A stretch of DNA of 64,000 bases, from assembly GCA_965644295.1 (NCBI GenBank), contig CBFFRP010000072.1:1-64000 (forward strand), read 5' to 3'. The translations under genes and the position numbers were made by a program. Below, piece by piece: positions 1 through 9,969 of this stretch. Numbering within the stretch: position 1 is the first letter of the stretch; each line of letters starts with the position of its first letter. Under the pieces are notes generated by a model that worked only from the letters and a program-made list of their open reading frames with translations, ran no database searches and was not told where the DNA came from. This DNA comes from Paraphysomonas bandaiensis (lineage: Eukaryota; Protista; Chrysophyceae).

Positions 1-2229
1 TTTCCAGAGAGATCTGGTGAGGATGTAAGCCTCTCGCTGAACTACCGGTGGCCAGGATTTGACCATGTTGGAGGAGACCATTGAGGGTCAGGCGCGCGGT
101 TGAAGGAGAGAGAGTGAAGTGTGCAGTAGAATTCATCCTGGGTGATGTCTTTTGCAAGAGTAGATTTGAGTGTGGCTGCCATGGCCGGAGTGGTCTTGGT
201 ACAAAGGGCCCGTCCGTAACCCCAGTTGCAGGGGAAGAGGGATTTTCGAGCGGGGGTGGAGTGGTTCCTGGCATGTCGCTGAGCCCGGATCAAGAAGGGA
301 TTTCCACCATGTAGGGTCATCCTGGAGCTGTTGTGCTACAGGGTCAAGTCAGGAGGTTTGGCATGATGTTCACGGAAGTGCGCATTAATGCCTTCATGAA
401 TGTCTTGCGGTGTTGTGAGGATGTGTCCGTCAGTTGTTTTTCACCGTGGTAAGTCGGAGTGGTGTTTTTACCTTGAGACCAATTTTCTGAAGAATTGCTT
501 GAAGTCTTTTCTGCTGTAGCAGTGCCTCCATCTGATTGGTGCGAGCCGTGAGTCTAGTCCGCATTTTCTGTCCTGGCTCTTCCATGAAGAAAGTCCTCTC
601 CAGTCGCAAAGGCAATTCGGAGAAGGTTTTTCTTGAGTGGCTTGCTTTTCGTTCCAACCCGGGATTACTCGTGGGTCCGCGTTGCGATGGCTGCACCAGA
701 AGTTGATGTCTGATATGCCCTTTGATGTGACCCTGAGAACTCCTGAGATAGGAGTCCCATCGGATGAACCACGTACGCAGTGATGATTTCGTGGGTGGGG
801 GTGGTTGCCGGGGGGCCGCGCCATCCATGCCGTTTGTATCCGGCAGAATTGAACATCTTTTGGATAATCCGCAAAACCATGATCATTCCTTCCTGTGTTG
901 CTCTCCATTTCCGGGGAAAAGCCATTCTTGAACTTTGAGCGTTTGCGCTGACAACGTTCGTGTAGTCGTGTGCTATAAGTACATGCAGGATTCTTTCGCT
1001 TCAAGCGAAGCCTGGAGGGAGTTATGTGATGGATGGCCGCTAGTCTGTTGGCTGCCACCTCAGGAGGGAGTATGGCAGACGATCCGTTATCTAAATGTGG
1101 TAGTTGTGCATGAAGTTGGAGGAGGTCTTGCGGTGTATGCCTGTACTTCCTTGGAGTCCTTCGGGTTTACATTGAGACGAGGGGGATTCGGAGGTGCGAC
1201 TCAGGTGGTCGAGGGTCAAGATTGACTGGTACAGTGAAACCGACCCAGACCGGTCGAGTGATCGAAGGCTGCTGCGAGTAGTGAGGGGAGTCAAGGCGGC
1301 CAGTGTCCCGTAACAGACATGTTCGGAGGTAACGGCGTGTGTAGAATATGATCGATCCGCGATATTCCTTTGCTCTAATCTGTGGAAGGTATGATATGTT
1401 TTCCTGGGTAGGAGAAGCTCCATAGGTGGGTACAGCCAGTTGGGTTTTGTCGGCAAAGTGGTCGTATGTCTCTGCCTTTCGGATTTGTCTCCATGGAGCC
1501 ATTGAAGTCGCCGGCGACAATGACAGTATGGTCCTTGGCTCTGGCTTTAGTGACCCATTTCGTAAGGATGTTGCATAGGAGCTTGTAGGGGTCAGCAGTA
1601 CAGATACCACGGGACGCTCTCCCTAGCTTGGTCAATTTGCTCCATAATGTGCAAGAGCCTGGCGTGGATGGCTTCGGGGGTAGATAGACGCTTATTAGTA
1701 CTAGGGTGTGCGCCACCGACGTTTTGAACTCTAGTCGGCTCACTAAACCAAGTCCCGTAAAGTCAGCCTTTGTGAAGGCGAGACGGCGCTTCCAGTATTC
1801 GCTGATTATGACTACTGTACCCCCCATTAGTGGGTCTCTTGAAGTCAGTTTTGGCTGCTTGCTGAGGAAGAGGCATATTCTTGATCCCTGGATTGCATCT
1901 TCTATGATACGTGTGAAGAAGTTGGCCTGAGTTTCTGTTAGACGGACATCCTGTAATAGGAGCACGTCCAATTTTTGCCGCTTAAAGTGTCGGATGATAG
2001 CTTGGACTTTGCCTGTGTGAGATGCCGGATTGCCATTTGTGTTCCATGTGGAGAGTCGGAGTCCCATGGCTGCTCCCGAGGGAGCCTTGGGGATGCTGCT
2101 GGAGGTCTCTGTAGGAGTTCCACTCTTGTCTGCAAGGAGTCTGTCCCATACTGCTTTATTGGCACCGCCTATGTCGCTGTCGTACGCAGCCCTGGCTTGG
2201 ATTAATATCTCAAGTGGCCAGCGTTGATC

Positions 2230-2600
2230 ACACCAGTAATGATGCCCGTAGTTGATGAGAAGTTCTTCATCACTTGGCAATGGGACGTATTGTACGGACA
2301 TAGAGGCGTTTATTTTTCGTGACAAACTTGACATTAGCCATGTTTGTGGCTAGGGGGTCATTAATATACCCAGCTTCGCATGTTACACATTGTCGGACTT
2401 GGTCAAAGCCATCTATTGCGAAGGTACCAGTACTGTCTTGAACTATGTAATCAGAACGCCTTGCAGACTGACTCAGCTTTGTTAGTGGATAGCGTTTGCC
2501 TTTGTACTCAGCAATGATGACGTCTGCTGGGAATGTGTTCTTCGCATAAAGGGATAGTCCTTTGGCAGTGTTATCGGCGTACGCAATGTAGAACTTTCTT
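2230..2600 (-). other. SET (lysine methyltransferase) domain inside the LINE polyprotein, split by 1-nt indels
   Basis: Hand translation of the minus strand: KFYIAYADNTAKGLSLYAKNTFPADVIIAEYKGK...DYIV...AIDG...AGYINDP..TNMANVKF....RLYVRTIRPIA(fs)DEELLINYGHHYW. It contains SET motifs I (GxxLxA), II (ExYG), III (YIN) and IV (EELxxxYG). The last segment is in frame with the endonuclease. Confidence 0.8.
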
Positions 2601-3039
2601 GACTAGATCCTTGTCCCAGCTGGTGGTATCAAGTGCTGGAGTTGGTCTGATCGTTCGTGTGGTCGTGGATTGGTGTGAGTTGTGAAGGTTCGTTGGTTGG
2701 TCACTTTCATCGTAATTTACGACCTTTTTGGCTTTCCGGGTTGGCTGGCATCGACTTGTCAACGCAGTTTGGGCGTGTTTCAACTGCATCTTCTTGTGCG
2801 ATGGTAGTGCTCCAGGGTTGAAGCCTGCAGAATCTGTCGATTTGTTCGTGCTAGCTTGGTGCTGCTGGACGAGGTTGTTCTGGTGCTGGTCGTCTTTGAT
2901 GTCCTATTGTTGTTCGTGATTGAGTCCGCGGGAAGTGTAGGTGGAGCGATGGGGTCAGACGTTGAGAGTATACTGGTGGCCAAGGTGTTTTCAAGAGATA
3001 GTAGGGCGTTGTCTAGGGCAGTAGAAAGACCGGCAGGGT

Positions 3040-3545
3040 CTAAGAGGAAGTAGTGAGCATCTTGTAGTATGACATGGTAGTAGTTATCACGAATAGCGTT
3101 CCTAAGTTCCTCCACCTTCCATGCGATGTTATAAGCTACTTTGTCAGTAGGGATACCTACAATGCTGAGATAATTACCATTTTGCGCCCACGTCGTGCAG
3201 GGGTTGATAGTAGAGGCTAAAAGGTGGACCTCTCGCACTGAGAGCCAGTGAGTTATGTCGTCCTCCGTAGTGTATGTTGTTTTGGCAGGTATTAAAAGTG
3301 CGGCCTGTGCGTGATCCAACTTATGTCGTAGTGGCTGAAGTGTGTGATGGGCCATGCACTCCCGTTGCATTGTGTCGAACGCTTGGGTGCCTAATGTATT
3401 TATAAAAGATGCTAGCGTGTGACGGTCCTTGCGTTGTTTGAGGTCTAATTTCAGACAGGAGCGAGTGTGTCGCCTGCTTGAAGCAAGAATGTGCAGATGA
3501 TAGAGTGTGCTGTATGCGCAGTATCCATCACTTGGGATATGTTGT
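3040..3545 (-). other. OTU-like cysteine protease domain within ORF 2780..5860
   Basis: HIPSDGYCAY (OTU P-x-D-G-x-C catalytic loop), HWLSVREV (W..xE box) and ILQDAHYF (catalytic HY) occur in canonical order. Confidence 0.65.
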
Positions 3546-5130
3546 TGTGTGCGAAGGGCTGAGGGTCTGAGGGTGAGGCGATAGACTCTGCTCATGTCGC
3601 ACATATGGAGCCTGAGTTGTCGACGGTCCGTGGGGTTCATCTGCCGTAGTTGACGTCGAGCTCTCGGTGACAAGGAGACTGCAATTACTTCCCTCTGTTC
3701 CTGTTGCTCTCTTTGCTCATGTAGCATAGATGGTACAGTTGACGGTTCAGAAGTCCAGATGATGTTGGTGCTCTGTCTGGAGGTCTGGTGTTGTAGAAAA
3801 CAGGATAGCCGCTCCTGAGTTCGTGTTAGAGCGTGCATGATGGAGGTGGGGATATTTGTTGCATTTAGTATGTGAAACCCATGCTGGCTGCGTATGATGT
3901 CATGGGTTACCACAGTGTTGGTAGAAGCGTGCACTGTTAGTGCCTGTCTGGAGAATGGTGATAGCTGTGCCCAACCAGGCGCCAGGTGCGGTTGAACAGC
4001 GTCCCATAGTCTGTATGGTATGGAGAGAAGATCGAGTAGCAGTTGGAAATCCTCCGTGTCTAGATGTAGTCCTGTGTGTGGATTCGAGGATTCATATTGC
4101 ATAAGTGTCTTACGGAGAGTGACAGTGGCTGTTGAGGGAATACCCTTTGTCAGGCAAAGGGTCCGCACATGCCTAGATACAACATGAGTGGAGTCTGCCC
4201 AGGGTTTGTTGCCATTCGCGAGATGCTGGGCAACTAGTAGGGCGCTGTGCGTGGTGTCCAATTTGTGCTCTGGTAGCGTGAATGATATCATGAGATCATA
4301 GTTGTCCGTCCTGGAAGCCTTGGCTATGAATCCTTCCCATATGTCTAAACAGGCAGGGGATAGCATGTGTGCGTATATTTCTTTTAAAAGGTTTCCCTGT
4401 GGGGAGGCAGCAATGGTTTGGGTTTCATCATATCTAACCCAGTTGTTCAGCAGATCGGAGTGAAAGGGCGTGTGACCCCGGCCCTCTGTGTAGTGTAGGG
4501 GGTATGTGGCAATATCCTTGGGCAGTACATCCGGCCTGAGGTCAGGAGTGGTAGTGGAGAGTGAGGATGGGCCGTCTGGGGCTAATGCTGGAGTTCCCAT
4601 GGTGTTCAGTTGAGTAAGGTTGGTGGTAGGTGGCTTCCGTTTGACTGGGAAATAGTCAAATAACGTTGCATACGGTGTGGTGGCATCCTTAGTGGGTAAG
4701 GGTAATGTGTGGGTGGATTTGCTGGGTCCGTCACCGCTGTTATCGGAGGAGAATTCCTTCCCCTGAAGGGCGTGGGAGGGATGGTTGATGGACCTGGCAC
4801 GGTGGACTCCTTGCATTCCCTTGGAATGACATTGCAACACATTTTGGAGACGCATGATGACGAGGTCAGGAATTCTCTCGAGTAGCGCGTGTAGTTCCAA
4901 CTCCACCGGGTATTTGGTGTCCAGGAAGAAGTGATCGTTGGAGCAAAACACATCATAAGATGGAAGGAATTGAGTTTGTGGAAGGAAGGAGGAATAGTGG
5001 GTGGACCAGTACGCCCAGTAAGGGAGAGGCGATAGTTTGTCTGGGGGTTTTCTAGGAGGAGGTAGAGTGTACTGTGTGTGTGTATGACACTGCAGTGGTG
5101 TTATGAGTGTGTTGGACAGTGAGAGAGAGC

Positions 5131-5275
5131 TGGTGATGTGTCCAACAGTACAGGTAGACAGGTACATGGACATGGTGATGTGTCCAACAGTACAGGTAGA
5201 CAGGTACATGGACATGGTGATGTGTCCAACAGTACAGGTAGACAGGTACATGGACATGGTGATGTGTCCAACAGC
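5131..5275. repeat. 42-bp tandem repeat (~3.4 copies), in frame in the LINE ORF (VGHITMSMYLSTCT)
   Basis: Unit tggtgatgtgtccaacagtacaggtagacaggtacatggaca starts at 5131, 5173, 5215 and 5257. Confidence 0.95.
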
Positions 5276-6231
5276 AGTAGAGGTATACACGGAATGGTAT
5301 ACATCCTGTAGGACACAGTAGTACAGTAGTCGAGTATACCGTATGCGGAATACAGTGTCTATCCAATGAGATGGATGGGCTGTGGGGGTGATAGGTGAAC
5401 AGGGTGAGGGGGTAGCCTGCTGGGTGGATGGACCACAGACAAACCATGTTGGGTTGGGTTGAGTGGGCGGCAGAAGGCAGCCCTGTTGCACAGTTGAGAG
5501 GGATCGAGAGTATTCAGTGATTGCATAGGGGGTCCATGGGGGTCGTTTTCGTGAGCCTGCTCGCACGAGCCATGTTCTGAGAGGTTGTAGCCGTAGAAAG
5601 CGATGGGTGAGACGAAGTTGTCTGCTGAGGGGATAGCACGTAGGTGCGGTCAGCGCTGCATTGGTGCAGGCACGTGGTTTAACTGAAGTAGTTGAGTAGG
5701 GTGAAGGTTGCAAGGCCAGGCAGGGGGGCTTGGAGCGTGTACAACATGGTGTGACAGGTAATTTGTCGGAAGCGTGGTGGTCAACAAAATGCAGCAGTAA
5801 GGGAGTGTAAAAGGCCCTGGGCACACTGATGTGACTCAGCCACAGTCTCAATAGAGACATTGGGCTTGGAGCTGGTTAATAGAGTGAAACTGTATGTTGG
5901 ACTGTATTTGCCATCGTAGGGCAGAGAAAATATGGACTTCTCGTAATCTATGTCACACAAGTATGGTGTAGATTAATTCTGACGTGCTTGTCGACACACA
6001 ATAAATACACAATAATTCTAATAAAGAAGATGGGTGTATTGTTTATTTTAGTACCACTATCACTACGTTAGATGATGTCTCGGAATAGGGAATATGTATC
6101 AACATATCAACTTCACGTCATAGGTGCCAGTTGCAGGCCGACTTGTTGGAATACTTTCAAATGAAGGAGTAAGACAATATATATGATGCGATGATATATA
6201 TACTGACGCATTTCAGAACAGAGGAGCTAGT

Positions 6232-6521
6232 TGCTCCATTCTGAGCGCGTACTTAGGTAGATTTGGGTGGGGGCCAGGTGTGTACCTAACTAATACTTGA
6301 CTAAGCCTCATATGTTATTTGCTAGCTACCTACTGAACCCAACTAGCTACATCATTATCACACGGTATTCAGCACTAAATACGCAATGAGAGCCCGGGTG
6401 GGGAACCGCTGAACTAAAAGCAATTTGTATATAGTACATAGGTAGAGGTGCGCGGTCGCAGCAATCAGCAGCACCCACTAGAGGGCCACGCAGTGATTAG
6501 TTACTCTGTCAGTATGGGGCA
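6232..6521 (+). mobile_element. MITE family A, complete copy
   Basis: ~270-290-bp dispersed repeat with six copies in the window. Imperfect terminal inverted repeats (family consensus TGCCCCATTCTGAGCGCGTA / TACGCTGTCAGTATGGGGCA). Confidence 0.8.
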
Positions 6522-6694
6522 ATATATATATGTAATTAGTATATTATATATTGTAGTATGAAACTGAAGTATAAGTTGGTGACTATTCAGGATACGACTG
6601 CTGAGTGTGTGGTTCGTACATTATAGAAGTAAATGATTGGTGTTGAGCACACCGGATACGGATATTGTAGTGATGAAACTGACATATATATTGA

Positions 6695-6892
6695 CAGCGG
6701 TTCCCCACCCGGGTTCTCATTGCATATTCAGTGTTGAATACTGTGTGATAATGATATAGCTAGTTGGGTTCAGTAGTATATGGTATATATGATATGTTAT
6801 ATGTGATAACATATGGGGCTCATTCAAGTATTAGTTAGGTACACACCCGGCCCCCACCCGGATCTACCTAAGTACGCGCTCAGAATGAAGCA
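6695..6892 (-). mobile_element. MITE family A, partial inverted copy
   Basis: Reverse complement of the 5' two thirds of 6232-6521. Confidence 0.8.
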
Positions 6893-7388
6893 AAATCTAC
6901 ATTTTTTGAATAACACAGAGTTGAAAAGTTACGTCATTATTGCTGCTAAGGAAAATTTAGGAAGTGTAGCGGAATGGAAGATGCTGATAGGAAGATAGGA
7001 AAGCAAAACATAACACATACAACATAGTATCGATATTGATGTCTTGTGCGCTTGTGTGTGTACTGCAGAGGAATAGGGCTAGAGAAATATCAATGTATTG
7101 CGATGTTCAATATATTGACATTACACAATTTTGTATATAAATTTGCCCAAGAAAGTTCTATGAATAGTATTAACAGAGTTCTAACTAGTAGTGCTATGAT
7201 AATCAAGAGGGTCTGTTGTGTTACAAGTTATGACAGGGACAGAATATAAACTGTGGCTGACAGTATATTTACAATATAAAGAAATGGAATTAAATTAATG
7301 GGTAAATAACTCCTCTGTACATATGCCGAGATGTACAGTATACTTATATACCTTTGGTTTAAACATTATATCTGACATTAATAAGAAT

Positions 7389-7794
7389 TTATGAATCTTC
7401 ATCCGCTGTGCTACTACCATTATTAATCTCTTCCTCTGCTTGAGCAATCGGTGTATCATCAAAATCGCCTAGTGCAAACTCCACTTTAACAACTGGATTT
7501 TCTTCTGAGTTCTCAGTTTCCTCTTCATCAGACTCCTGTATGACATGTCACTCAATGAACGGACAACATGACACTTTCATTACATACTTCATTGTTTACT
7601 TCGGTTGTATTCAGTATACCACTATCAATAACCACACATTCTGGTCCAGCTTTTTTGACGTTTTCTTCAAGCTCACGATTAGCTTGTTCAATCACAGGTA
7701 AGAACTGCTTGACGCGATCCAATACTGCATATACATGTCTTAAATATATACAAGAAGATAATGATATGAACAAACCAGATGATCCAGTATCCAT
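7389..7794 (-). CDS. NOPCHAP1/C12orf45 (DUF4598)-like protein, 3 exons
   Basis: VLDRVKQFLPVIEQANRELE and VKVEFALGDFD motifs. GT-AG introns at ~7725-7775 and 7536-7587 restore the frame. Stop at 7389-7391. Confidence 0.7.
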
Positions 7795-8086
7795 AGGTGT
7801 AATATAGGGTTAATATATAGAGTGAGGTTTGTGTTGATGTTAATGGAATGATGCATTGATTCTATTGGAGGCTGCTGTATGCAGCATACGCCTCATATGA
7901 ACCACTAAACTGAATACCGAATACTGATTTTGAGTACAGTTTTCCCCAAAAAAAAGTCCACCGGCTTTTTTATATATATAAAGACCGTGGGTTTGTGTGT
8001 TTTCAGGTACTTAAAATAGGGATATTACACTCTCTATGGGTCAAAAACTGGTATATATACTATATGTATAGTGTACTGCTGTACTG

Positions 8087-8318
8087 TGTTGTTCTACAGG
8101 TACATGTACAGGTACACTTGACTCTATGCACTCCACACTGGTGTTGTTCTACAGGTACATGTCTAGATGTACAGGTACACTTGTCTCTATGCACTCCACA
8201 CTGGTGTTGTTCTACAGGTACATGTCTAGATGTACAGGTACACTTGTCTCTATGCACTCCACACTGGTGTTTGTTCTACAGGTACATACATGTACAGGTA
8301 CACTTGTCTCTATGCACT
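8087..8318. repeat. ~63-bp tandem minisatellite (~3.7 copies) between divergent genes
   Basis: Repeated gttctacaggtacatgtctagatgtacaggtacacttgtctctatgcactccacactggtgtt. Confidence 0.9.
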
Positions 8319-8436
8319 GCATGTATGCCGCTATATGCTATGAGATGCAGCCATTACTATTTCACTCCAATGCCATACATTAACACACCCTCATATCATA
8401 ATCCCCGCTACCACCCTACCAATCATCCAATATATC

Positions 8437-9969
<1,533 letters not shown>

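Follow-up and report, generated by a model that had tools for sequence, protein, structure and literature searches.

The beginning of contig CBFFRP010000072.1 from Paraphysomonas bandaiensis raises the question of whether a LINE can carry, within its own polyprotein, domains of the kinds that act on chromatin and ubiquitin, or whether a LINE and an unrelated host gene have come to be read as one. A reading made from the letters of a 64,000-nt stretch of this contig (the window, positions 1 to 64,000) had described a LINE in which, after correction of three single-base frameshifts, an OTU-like deubiquitinase and a SET methyltransferase stand fused ahead of the endonuclease. Intact copies elsewhere in the genome confirm a SET-bearing LINE polyprotein, and we consider it very likely that the minus strand of positions 1-5929 holds one copy of an autonomous APE-type LINE of this marine protist, a young element present in many copies that carries SET and Cys-His domains with putative methyltransferase and protease roles.

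Structure, ends and copies of the element

All of the features described here lie on the minus strand. Positions 1-5929 represent the 5' two-thirds of a non-LTR retrotransposon of ~9.35 kb whose 3' side is cut off by the start of the contig; the window copy is 5'-complete and frameshifted, and it breaks off at amino acid ~1934 of the polyprotein, just short of the RT core. At least 29 copies in the genome cover the whole region at 95-100% identity, and intact copies are ~9.35 kb long and encode a single polyprotein of 3016 aa. One such copy (G000:C440) has the 3016-aa ORF without breaks, and Pfam matches place SET (aa 1087-1191, E 1.3e-8), the APE endonuclease (Exo_endo_phos, aa 1257-1494, E 2.4e-9) and RT (RVT_1, aa 1951-2244, E 1.1e-14) in one frame, the last being the RT that the sequence-only reading had proposed to seek beyond the window. 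A further copy has a 1761-aa ORF that holds both SET and APE. The joining of N-terminal region, SET and endonuclease into one polyprotein thus stands as a single ORF in intact copies and is no artefact of frameshift correction. The polyprotein begins with a low-complexity N-terminus containing a 14-aa repeat, followed by the remnants of two papain-like Cys-His domains, an intact OTU-like Cys-His domain, the minimal SET domain, APE, RT and a C-terminal CCHC motif; RNase H is a motif impression that finds no match in Pfam or PDB sequence searches. Relatives of the RT number 11 among the sequences found.

In the window, the first open piece of the polyprotein is the 1026-aa ORF at 2780-5860, present as originally described, which corresponds to aa 1-1000 of the intact ORF with a further 14-aa repeat unit added, and contains the low-complexity N-terminus, the OTU-like domain and those Cys-His domains that are degenerate or reduced to a remnant. 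The repeat itself is an in-frame 42-nt tandem array at 5104-5275 with GHITMSMYLSTCTV units, of which the window has four and the intact copy three. In the endonuclease (1291-2049) indels disrupt the 3' end; Exo_endo_phos is matched at E 2.2e-7 in the window ORF at 1375-2334 as compared to 1.6e-9 in an intact copy, and the region between APE and RT (1-1290, aa ~1500-1934) is riddled with indels of 1-4 nt.

The ends of the element are sharp. Thirteen copies share identical first nucleotides beneath unrelated upstream flanks, and the 5' and 3' termini are the same in different copies whose flanks are unrelated; target site duplications (TSDs) of 12-14 bp were seen in three copies. The shared copy starts move the 5' boundary, which had been put at 5860, to ~5929, with a 69-nt 5'UTR at 5861-5929; the first nucleotides read (A)ATTCTCTGCCCTACG in other copies and TTTTCTCTGCCC in the window. 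A search for terminal or inverted repeats (LTR or TIR) found none, the sole repeat being the internal 42-nt tandem, and the 3' end, which reads …CATTCACTACT, has no poly(A) tail. Sharp termini, TSDs of 12-14 bp and the absence of LTR and TIR show that the element moves by target-primed reverse transcription, and its non-LTR-type RT, its APE N-terminal to the RT and its dispersed copies with defined ends and variable TSDs are those of an APE-type LINE. It is also young and expressed: polyA metatranscriptome contigs X15 and X16 reach no further than 5928, at the 5' terminus of the element, where a DNA contig continues into a different flank; the RNA contigs start at the first nucleotides of the element. 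Coverage of the SET region by RNA contigs is scant (depth 0-1.6). In an independent marine metagenome, one contig of 3988 nt extends over APE, SET and the OTU-like domain.

Frameshifts and damage in the window copy

Alignment to an intact copy bears out the three frameshifts, which had been put at ~2790, ~2596 and ~2272, and sites them at 2818 (one C missing), 2607 (one extra T) and 2272 (one extra T, between TIRPIAK and DEELLINYG); about 20 further indels of 1-4 nt, between 1457 and 90, had gone unlisted. The three frameshifts are private to the window copy, which also has the extra 42-nt repeat unit (at ~5233) and 37 substitutions relative to the intact copy. There is something short of an even chance, in our estimate, that the frameshifts are errors of assembly or polishing near the contig end and that the window copy is really intact. 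The first 1.5 kb of the contig holds 20 of the 24 small indels, single-base insertions for the most part, and in DNA run X1 the extra bases are absent from nearly all of the contig depth (4654.8 of 4654.8 at 1258; 7116 of 7205 at 1373). However, with at least 30 near-identical copies in the genome, the reads of one mutated copy would amount to a few per cent at most, and because of this dilution the read data do not separate assembly error from real indels; the 37 substitutions also set the window copy apart.

The Cys-His and SET domains and their conservation

The Cys-His domains upstream of SET are in different states of preservation. The first papain-like domain survives in the window as a C-terminal His-motif remnant (…SNDHFFLD…) at 4910-5017, which matches positions 141-176 of the A5 profile (E 1e-13), and is complete only in subfamily A2. 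The second (3599-4531) is degenerate, with its Cys motif lost and the His motif SQHGFHIL kept; the A5 profile matches it at 3866-4174 (E 1.6e-3), and its homologue in family B retains GRGFC…SHYFLL. An AF2 model of this second domain was unusable. The OTU-like domain at 2999-3571 has both motifs intact, IPSDGYCAY with its Cys codon at ~3518-3520 and DAHYFLLD with its His codon at ~3053-3055, and the two motifs are conserved in families A, B and P0004 as IPSDGYCAY or IPANGYCAY and as DAHYFLL, NAHFYII or DAHYYHL.

The assignment of this last domain to the OTU/otubain clan is moderately supported by its Cys/His motifs, Foldseek, the Atlas shape search and language-model neighbours. In a low-confidence model (pLDDT 51.5) the Cys opens a helix (27-41) and the His belongs to a strand (183-187). 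With this model the top ~27 Foldseek matches in the PDB are all OTU deubiquitinases (best E 5.5e-3, TM <=0.3), the VIA structure search returns vOTU at Z 4.1-4.9 over 120-130 residues, and the best Atlas shape match is the C65 otubain at TM 0.41; a wide structural search independent of Foldseek returned helical bundles only. Among the 100 nearest Atlas feature clusters, 52 carry PF02338. The domain would share with otubains and nairovirus vOTU a DGxC that opens a helix, then a helical lobe and a beta-sheet bearing H[YF], but it differs from the OTU family in lacking any profile-level sequence match, the modelled fold reaching TM <=0.41 and Z of about 4-5. The putative deubiquitinase named by the sequence-only reading draws its moderate support from its motifs and from the fold neighbours of a model with pLDDT 51, and finds none at the profile level: Pfam SET, Exo_endo_phos and RVT_1 were matched as that reading had expected, but Pfam OTU (PF02338, PF10275) matched no version of the domain in families A, A2 and B at E up to 10.

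It is quite possible, although we lean against it, that the Cys-His domains serve only to process the polyprotein, as papain-like leader proteases outside the OTU family and without deubiquitinase activity. Besides the missing Pfam match, PF02338 finds 10 other loci in the whole genome, none of them in LINEs, and the element profile does not cross-match these 10 host loci; two or three such domains stand in tandem with decayed copies, an arrangement that resembles the leader-protease arrays of viruses, and a single ORF of 3016 aa plausibly needs processing. Profile-profile comparison among the Cys-His domain types was not significant. Against this, nearly all of the named neighbours in the structure and feature searches are OTU or otubain, the spacing of ~155 aa between DGxC and H[YF] fits OTU, and OTU-fold viral proteases perform both jobs, so that the processing and deubiquitinase readings do not exclude one another.

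The minimal SET domain, reported at 2600-2230, occupies 2230-2602 and is split by the frameshift at 2272. Its N-terminal part in the window (2273-2602) passes Pfam SET unaided (E 5.7e-5, 23.9 bits, cut-off 22.4), and in intact copies PF00856 is covered over all of its positions 1-105 at E 6e-9 and 1e-8 (36.7 and 35.7 bits, threshold 22.4). The C-terminal motif DEELLINYGHHYW does share its frame with the endonuclease ORF at 1375-2334, as had been noted, and the clusters of pre-SET and post-SET cysteines are absent. The best PDB sequence matches, both marginal, include KMT2D/2C (E 4e-3) and PBCV-1 vSET (PDB 1n3j, E 4.5e-3), which recovers the likeness to the vSET C-terminus noted in the sequence-only reading. 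Both the element domain and vSET are minimal SETs that lack pre- and post-SET Zn clusters, and the C-terminal block KRLYVRTIRPIAKDEELLINYGHHYW aligns with 26 vSET residues; EELLINYG, unchanged from family A to family B, lines up with EEITISYG in vSET and EELTYDY in KMT2D, with the Tyr of the catalytic position present. Unlike vSET, a free viral enzyme of 119 aa, the element domain is part of a 3016-aa retroelement protein and reads NDP for NHS.

This substitution may bear on activity. In both family A and family B, KGLSLYA or KGNALYA stands in place of the canonical cofactor motif GxG, and GYINDPL in place of (R/Y)FINHSC; the element has GLS for GxG and NDPL for NHxC, with the Asn kept and the His replaced by Asp. 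Together with a sub-threshold match to the Pfam PR domain (PRDM2_PR), these changes could indicate a catalytically inactive binding module that, for example, docks on histone tails or host chromatin complexes and targets integration, rather than a writer of marks. We think this unlikely. Families with ~49% overall identity show no change in the YIN core or in the ELLxNYG motif, which includes the Tyr at the catalytic position, and the domain exceeds the SET gathering threshold over the full profile; PRDM9 and other PR/SET enzymes are active although they lack the canonical His, which counts against an inactive SET.

Whether or not it is active, the SET domain belongs to the element. At 44 loci a Pfam SET match precedes a Pfam APE match on the same strand by 162-245 bp, and at 34 of these both stand in one open frame; the loci span several families with protein identity down to 40-50%, with SET identity classes of 100, 67, 50 and 44% among families. 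Family B (P0001, identical to G000:C426) keeps the domain order at 36-49% identity. Every copy found contains the SET/OTU-like region, which answers the earlier concern that copies without it might exist, and the domain order recurs in a second family with ~40% identity. Comparison of subfamilies A and A2 gives an overall dN/dS of 0.23, with 0.15 in the OTU-like domain, and pooled aa 430-1200 show 25 synonymous against 28 nonsynonymous changes (ratio ~0.35), pairwise values that blend changes in the master lineage with changes after insertion. The SET and Cys-His domains are shown to be integral to the element, being in frame, under purifying selection and conserved over several diverged families; because SET-APE adjacency recurs over many copies and families at a dN/dS of 0.23, SET is a part of the element that has been conserved, and no product of accidental fusion to a host gene. 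That a LINE landed by accident in frame with a host SET/OTU gene, or that frameshift correction created the fusion at a single locus, has next to no probability left and was rejected: the domains do lie in three different frames in the window itself, but uninterrupted ORFs exist, all full-length copies include the N-terminal region and begin ahead of it at one and the same nucleotide, at unrelated TSD-flanked sites, and SET-to-APE adjacency is common to the 44 loci and several diverged families.

Related elements and a possible function

Reportedly, NeSL-1 of C. elegans is a LINE with an internal cysteine protease; it is said to be, like our element, a single-ORF non-LTR element with the protease upstream of the RT, thought to process the polyprotein, but to differ in its restriction-like endonuclease, its Ulp1/C48-type protease and its lack of SET. 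Acquired cytosine methyltransferases are described for the retrotransposons SymbioLINE-Dnmt, KnitGypsy-Dnmt3 and SymbioDIRS-Dnmt3 (de Mendoza et al. 2018, PMC5890265). As in our element, the coding region of a retrotransposon took up a host-type epigenetic writer, under purifying selection and in diverged, transcribed subfamilies of a marine protist (PMC5890265). The writer there is a DNA C5-methyltransferase, placed in the LINE case in a separate ORF1 (PMC5890265), whereas here it is a SET domain of the protein-lysine type that immediately precedes APE within one ORF, in frame with it and accompanied by Cys-His protease domains. SET accessory genes occur in Phytophthora HarbingerS and MuDR according to Kojima & Jurka 2014, as cited in PMC12730594; proto-Helentron-Pi has SET and Helentrons have OTU ORFs (PMC4067079), and a red-algal Plavaka, PAG2, carries SET (10.1101/2025.02.11.637652). 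These too are mobile elements bearing SET, several of them from stramenopiles, and Helentrons combine an OTU-like cysteine protease with an APE endonuclease within the same element type (PMC4067079). To judge by their descriptions rather than their sequences, however, they are DNA or rolling-circle elements with SET in a separate accessory ORF, and not as an in-frame domain of a LINE polyprotein. Our literature search found SET in DNA transposons and DNMT in LINEs, and no report of SET in a LINE, nor of a LINE protein that combines SET and a probable OTU-like protease ahead of endonuclease and RT.

In the mechanism that we propose, the OTU-like domain would act in cis as a polyprotein-processing protease and possibly also as a deubiquitinase. 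The OTU-fold leader proteases of viruses, e.g., arterivirus PLP2 and the tymovirus protease, offer a parallel. SET, either released or tethered, would methylate a lysine where the element is transcribed or integrates, the substrate being a histone or some other protein of chromatin or of the element, and the mark may bias local chromatin in favour of the element or guide its integration. We offer tentatively, and hold to be somewhat doubtful, the broader proposal that this is the first known retrotransposon clade to encode its own histone lysine methyltransferase, in which SET, processed by the OTU-like domain or tethered to EN-RT, would mark the element's own transcribed copies or fresh insertions and so override or pre-empt heterochromatin silencing, or would mark preferred targets. 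If this is true, the acquisition of SET by LINE, Gypsy and other elements in one genome would amount to a lineage-specific chromatin arms race.

The LINE and its families

The SET domain that lies ahead of the APE endonuclease in the LINE on the minus strand of window 1-5929 is a conserved module of the element and not an accident, and the polyprotein in which it occurs together with Cys-His domains is under constraint. In the window copy, a 1026-aa minus-strand ORF occupies 5860-2780, and three-frame translation downstream of it yields three minus-strand pieces in different frames: 72 aa in the second frame, 110 aa (2602-2273) in the first frame again, reading SRKFYIAYADNTAKGLSLYA…TIRPIAK, and a third-frame piece that begins DEELLINYGHHYW and continues into a 319-aa ORF. 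Pfam places SET at window 2273-2602 (minus strand; E 5.7e-5, 23.9 bits against a cut-off of 22.4) and Exo_endo_phos at 1378-2334 (minus strand; E 2.2e-7), and the ORF, frame pieces and both domains described in the sequence-only reading were thus all recovered. The three frameshifts that it proposed are present as a 1-nt deletion at 2818 and 1-nt insertions at 2607 and 2272 when the copy is aligned to an intact one on contig C440, and since the latter is uninterrupted they are private to the window copy. Further differences from C440 consist of an additional 42-nt repeat unit at ~5233, ~20 more indels of 1-4 nt between 1457 and 90, and 37 substitutions in 5794 aligned bases. The crowding of the indels toward the contig end, and the lack of them in almost all DNA contigs of run X1, indicate that they may be assembly errors. 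The RT is missing from this copy because the window is the very start of its contig, C72. Broken copies were read piece by piece. The 42-nt (14-aa) unit belongs to an in-frame tandem repeat at window 5104-5275 whose copy number varies, with 4 units in the window and 3 in C440. The G+C content is ~50% across window 1-6000 as compared to 33-42% farther on.

In the 62.5 Mb assembly, at least 29 stretches match these 5.9 kb at 95-100% identity, most of them over the full length. A search of the genome for intact copies with the same domain order, as the earlier reading had proposed, was productive: the C440 copy is a single uninterrupted ORF of 3016 aa (L025, the retrieved stretch, 671-9721, minus strand) in which Pfam finds SET (aa 1087-1191), Exo_endo_phos (aa 1257-1494) and RVT_1 (aa 1951-2244), and the copy on C434 has SET (E 6.3e-9, all 105 profile positions) together with APE in an ORF of 1761 aa. 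Thirteen copies begin at a common 5' start, (A)ATTCTCTGCCCTACGATGGC, 69 nt ahead of the ATG and preceded by unrelated flanks, and copies end in …AATAATCAGACATTCACTACT after a ~235-nt 3'UTR, with no poly(A). Target-site duplications are seen for C440 (AGTAATTCATAA), C434 (ATGTCACTTCAAGA) and a copy on C231 (GTTTAGTAGGGA). Repeats at the ends, whether direct or inverted, are absent from the intact copy, whose one repeat is the 42-nt tandem array inside it. The element is a non-LTR retrotransposon with TPRT-type mobility, and its family is young, given that copies are 98-99.9% identical to C440. Relatives of the RT are few and unnamed, some being TARA Oceans fragments that are 100% identical; related RTs in JGI metagenomes (stretches L027-L032) are 5'-truncated and uninformative on SET. 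A CCHC-like motif (CSDC…H…C) occurs at aa ~2751. The motif IFTDGS…VRSHPER suggested an RNase H, which is not claimed here since neither Pfam nor PDB backs it.

Two observations concern the termini. In a copy on C25 (5' junction in L006), 18 nt of the 5'UTR, CCTACGATGGCAAATACA, occur a second time directly upstream of the element start, in what looks like a template-jump or microhomology junction of 5'-end completion. A hairpin-bearing 3'UTR segment, GGTTGCACCTTGGTGCTTGCGGCGACGCACAAGCAGC (3'UTR in L016 and L021), has diverged counterparts in the flanks of two copies (L010, ~1380-1540, 5' flank; L022, ~3700-3760, 3' flank), which suggests related elements with a common 3' tail or insertion of elements into one another's 3'UTRs. 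The segment matches no known Rfam family, and an Rfam search of the intact copy returned nothing.

The window's family (family A) has relatives in the same genome. P0001, a 1774-aa protein from an ENA assembly, is 100% identical to contig C426 of the genome assembly and is therefore a second family (B) of the same organism; its domain order equals that of family A (N-domain, OTU-like domain, SET, APE, RT), with identities of 26-29% in the N-domain, 41-44% in the OTU-like domain, 49% in SET+APE and 54% in the RT. Genome-wide, Pfam finds 136 SET and 80 APE matches, and in 44 cases the two form a pair on one strand, SET being 162-245 bp upstream of APE; the spacing is exactly 196 bp in 28 of the 44, and 34 pairs lie in one open frame, up to 3731 aa long. 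The family A SET as query finds other LINE families at 63-69%, 49-50% and 44-45% identity, the families on C644, C566, C505, C377 and C143 being known here from coordinates only. In all, the genome has six or more families (C440, C426, C644/C566/C661, C505, C377 and C143/C146). No EN-RT copies without the SET/OTU region were found in the genome, the case in which the sequence-only reading would have seen a LINE inserted by chance in frame with a host gene. Between the subfamilies A (C440) and A2 (C255), which are 98.2% identical, dN/dS is 0.23 over the whole ORF (85 synonymous and 63 nonsynonymous changes), 0.15 in the OTU-like domain (8 and 4) and ~0.35 for aa 430-1200 pooled (25 and 28); the value for SET, 0.43, comes from 2 and 3 changes, too few to read alone.

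The SET and Cys-His domains

The SET domain is without pre-SET or post-SET cysteine clusters. In PDB its closest sequence matches are to KMT2D/2C over the full domain (E ~4e-3) and to chlorovirus vSET (E 4.5e-3), and the latter match, which covers the C-terminal block, bears out the likeness to vSET that the sequence-only reading had noted. A word-indexed search with the SET domain alone found no free-standing small SET relatives, and no relative of SET-APE or the OTU-like domain could be confirmed in JGI metagenome contigs or IMG/VR. Invariant in families A and B are ELLINYG, with Tyr at the catalytic position, and the YIN core; the motifs depart from the canonical ones in that NHxC is NDPL and GxG is GLS. 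From its sequence, methyltransferase activity of the domain is plausible, the alternative being a SET that is non-catalytic.

For the region upstream, the earlier reading had proposed an OTU-like deubiquitinase and a check against the Pfam profiles OTU, SET, Exo_endo_phos and RVT_1. The last three matched but OTU did not: the whole 1026-aa ORF and its sub-pieces gave neither OTU nor any other Pfam family, and PF02338 run against the genome matched 10 other loci, 0 of them in LINEs. With aa 430-960 as query, exhaustive phmmer on 1.8 billion representatives returned 3 matches, all fragments of these elements; a full-length search with the OTU+SET region found P0001 alone, and nothing but a spurious lectin-repeat match came from searching PDB sequences with the OTU-like domain or its profile. 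A probable OTU-clan fold is supported by motifs, structure and language-model neighbours. The motif pair IPSDGYCAY … DAHYFLLD (aa ~750-940) is kept in three families, and in an AF2 model of the domain (pLDDT only 51.5) the Cys is at the N-terminal end of a helix and the His within a strand. In a Foldseek search of PDB with this model the top ~27 matches are all OTU deubiquitinases, though with TM <=0.3, including a rice OTUB-like protein (E 5.5e-3, probability 0.93) and nairovirus vOTUs; VIA alignments to vOTUs extend over 120-130 residues with Z 4.1-4.9. The best TM in an Atlas shape search, 0.41, belongs to an otubain C65 cluster, and PF02338 is present in 52 of 100 language-model neighbour clusters, with no other family represented. 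Against such a fold, a Foldseek-independent structure search found helical bundles only. On balance it is likely that aa ~750-940 belongs to the OTU clan; as to function, the domain might be a protease without DUB activity. An AF2 model of aa 430-739 (pLDDT 36) was discarded as unusable.

The elements contain further domains of this Cys-His type. Subfamily A2 (L019:262-1260 and L020; contigs C132 and C255) is 98% identical to A from ORF nt 800 onward and differs in the 5' region, where it has a complete extra N-terminal Cys-His domain, PMEGFCGLAAIA … SNDHFFLD. This domain is homologous to the family B N-domain (GRGFC … SHYFLL; BLASTP E 8e-9), and family A retains its C-terminal half, the rest being replaced by a low-complexity, repeat-bearing segment. 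A profile built from the A2 extra domain and the family B N-domain was run on the window and matched a His-half remnant at 4910-5017 (E 1e-13) and a degenerate copy without the Cys at 3866-4174 (E 1.6e-3), so that the window's family has a single Cys-His domain that is apparently competent, beside two decayed ones. Comparing the two Cys-His domain types by hhalign yielded no significant match (E 0.09). In family C (C644), a single 3731-aa frame contains two SETs and two such Cys-His domains.

Expression and genomic surroundings

Runs from 14 studies contain sequence of the element; most are marine metagenomes, and polyA metatranscriptomes have it as well. An independent marine metagenome has a 3988-nt contig that extends over window 1001-4995 and so includes APE, SET and the OTU-like domain. 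RNA contigs cover window 1-1575 and 3463-5928, ending at 5928, the element's 5' end, while one DNA contig continues past 5928 into a different flank, which agrees with an internal promoter as the source of the RNA. Hardly any RNA covers the SET region, and the RNA data are contigs with no single full-length transcript among them. The RNA is 10-40 times as deep over window 4150-5930 as over the rest, contigs departing from the window at 4148, 4716 and 5020, and many loci match the element's 5' part only, with open frames of ~406 or ~597 aa (e.g., C35:260930-261037, C263:430121-430228 and C363:13336-13443). This suggests short derivatives with the LINE's 5' end that are abundant and more highly expressed.

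SET-bearing elements of other classes seem to be common in this genome. Identical open frames of 1526 aa with a Pfam SET (35.8 bits) and no adjacent APE form an apparent further multi-copy family (C119:140077, C123:82391, C201:5582, C210:190558, C252:2148, C432:239162 and C191:26067), and SETs 25-32% identical to that of the LINE occur in other long ORFs (C476, 1947 aa; C339, 1714 aa; C654:17896; C661:12575). Within the window, an imperfect coding-like tandem repeat of VQVHLSLCTPHWCCSTGTCLD units at ~8000-8400 (region 7995-9886) lies just upstream of ORFs 8437-8904 and 8987-9886, which by eye resemble an intron-split seryl-tRNA synthetase. Ordinary eukaryotic host genes flank the element at 18288-49206, encoding a 1581-aa ankyrin/IQ protein, a response-regulator-domain protein, V-ATPase subunit a (E 1.5e-244) and an F-box/ankyrin protein.

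Possible roles and relation to other mobile elements

The OTU-like domain would cut the polyprotein in cis and may remove ubiquitin, and SET would methylate a lysine on a histone or other protein; such methylation might favour expression of the element, or choose or mark its integration sites. Two kinds of DNA transposon in Phytophthora, HarbingerS and MuDR, are reported to have SET genes (as cited in PMC12730594), a proto-Helentron of P. infestans has SET and Helentrons also have OTU-like proteases and an APE domain (PMC4067079), and an accessory gene of red-algal Plavaka elements has SET (10.1101/2025.02.11.637652). Among retrotransposons, DNMT-bearing ones include a LINE with DNMT in ORF1 (PMC5890265), and neither SET nor OTU figures in a review on the accessory domains of retrotransposon polyproteins. 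Our literature search found no report of SET or OTU inside a LINE or other non-LTR element; Repbase Reports lay outside its reach, so that this is no proof of absence. With SET known from DNA transposons and DNMT from retrotransposons, and neither report nor review placing SET in a LINE, we regard the element as a novel instance of something already known, the capture of an epigenetic writer by mobile DNA. Given the repertoire of OTU, SET and APE that Helentrons and this LINE have in common, one may ask whether LINEs and rolling-circle transposons have exchanged modules in stramenopiles.

The system is a tractable one, with young copies, one unbroken ORF, families at 40-50% identity, detected RNA and an organism that is common in marine metagenomes, and it opens the questions of which lysine is methylated, whether the polyprotein cleaves itself and whether a mark is placed on the element's own copies. 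Transposons with epigenetic enzymes are rare and provide the clearest evidence of elements manipulating host chromatin and not merely suffering it; a LINE that fuses SET and a probable OTU-type protease to its endonuclease and RT would extend this capture to histone methylation by a retroelement.
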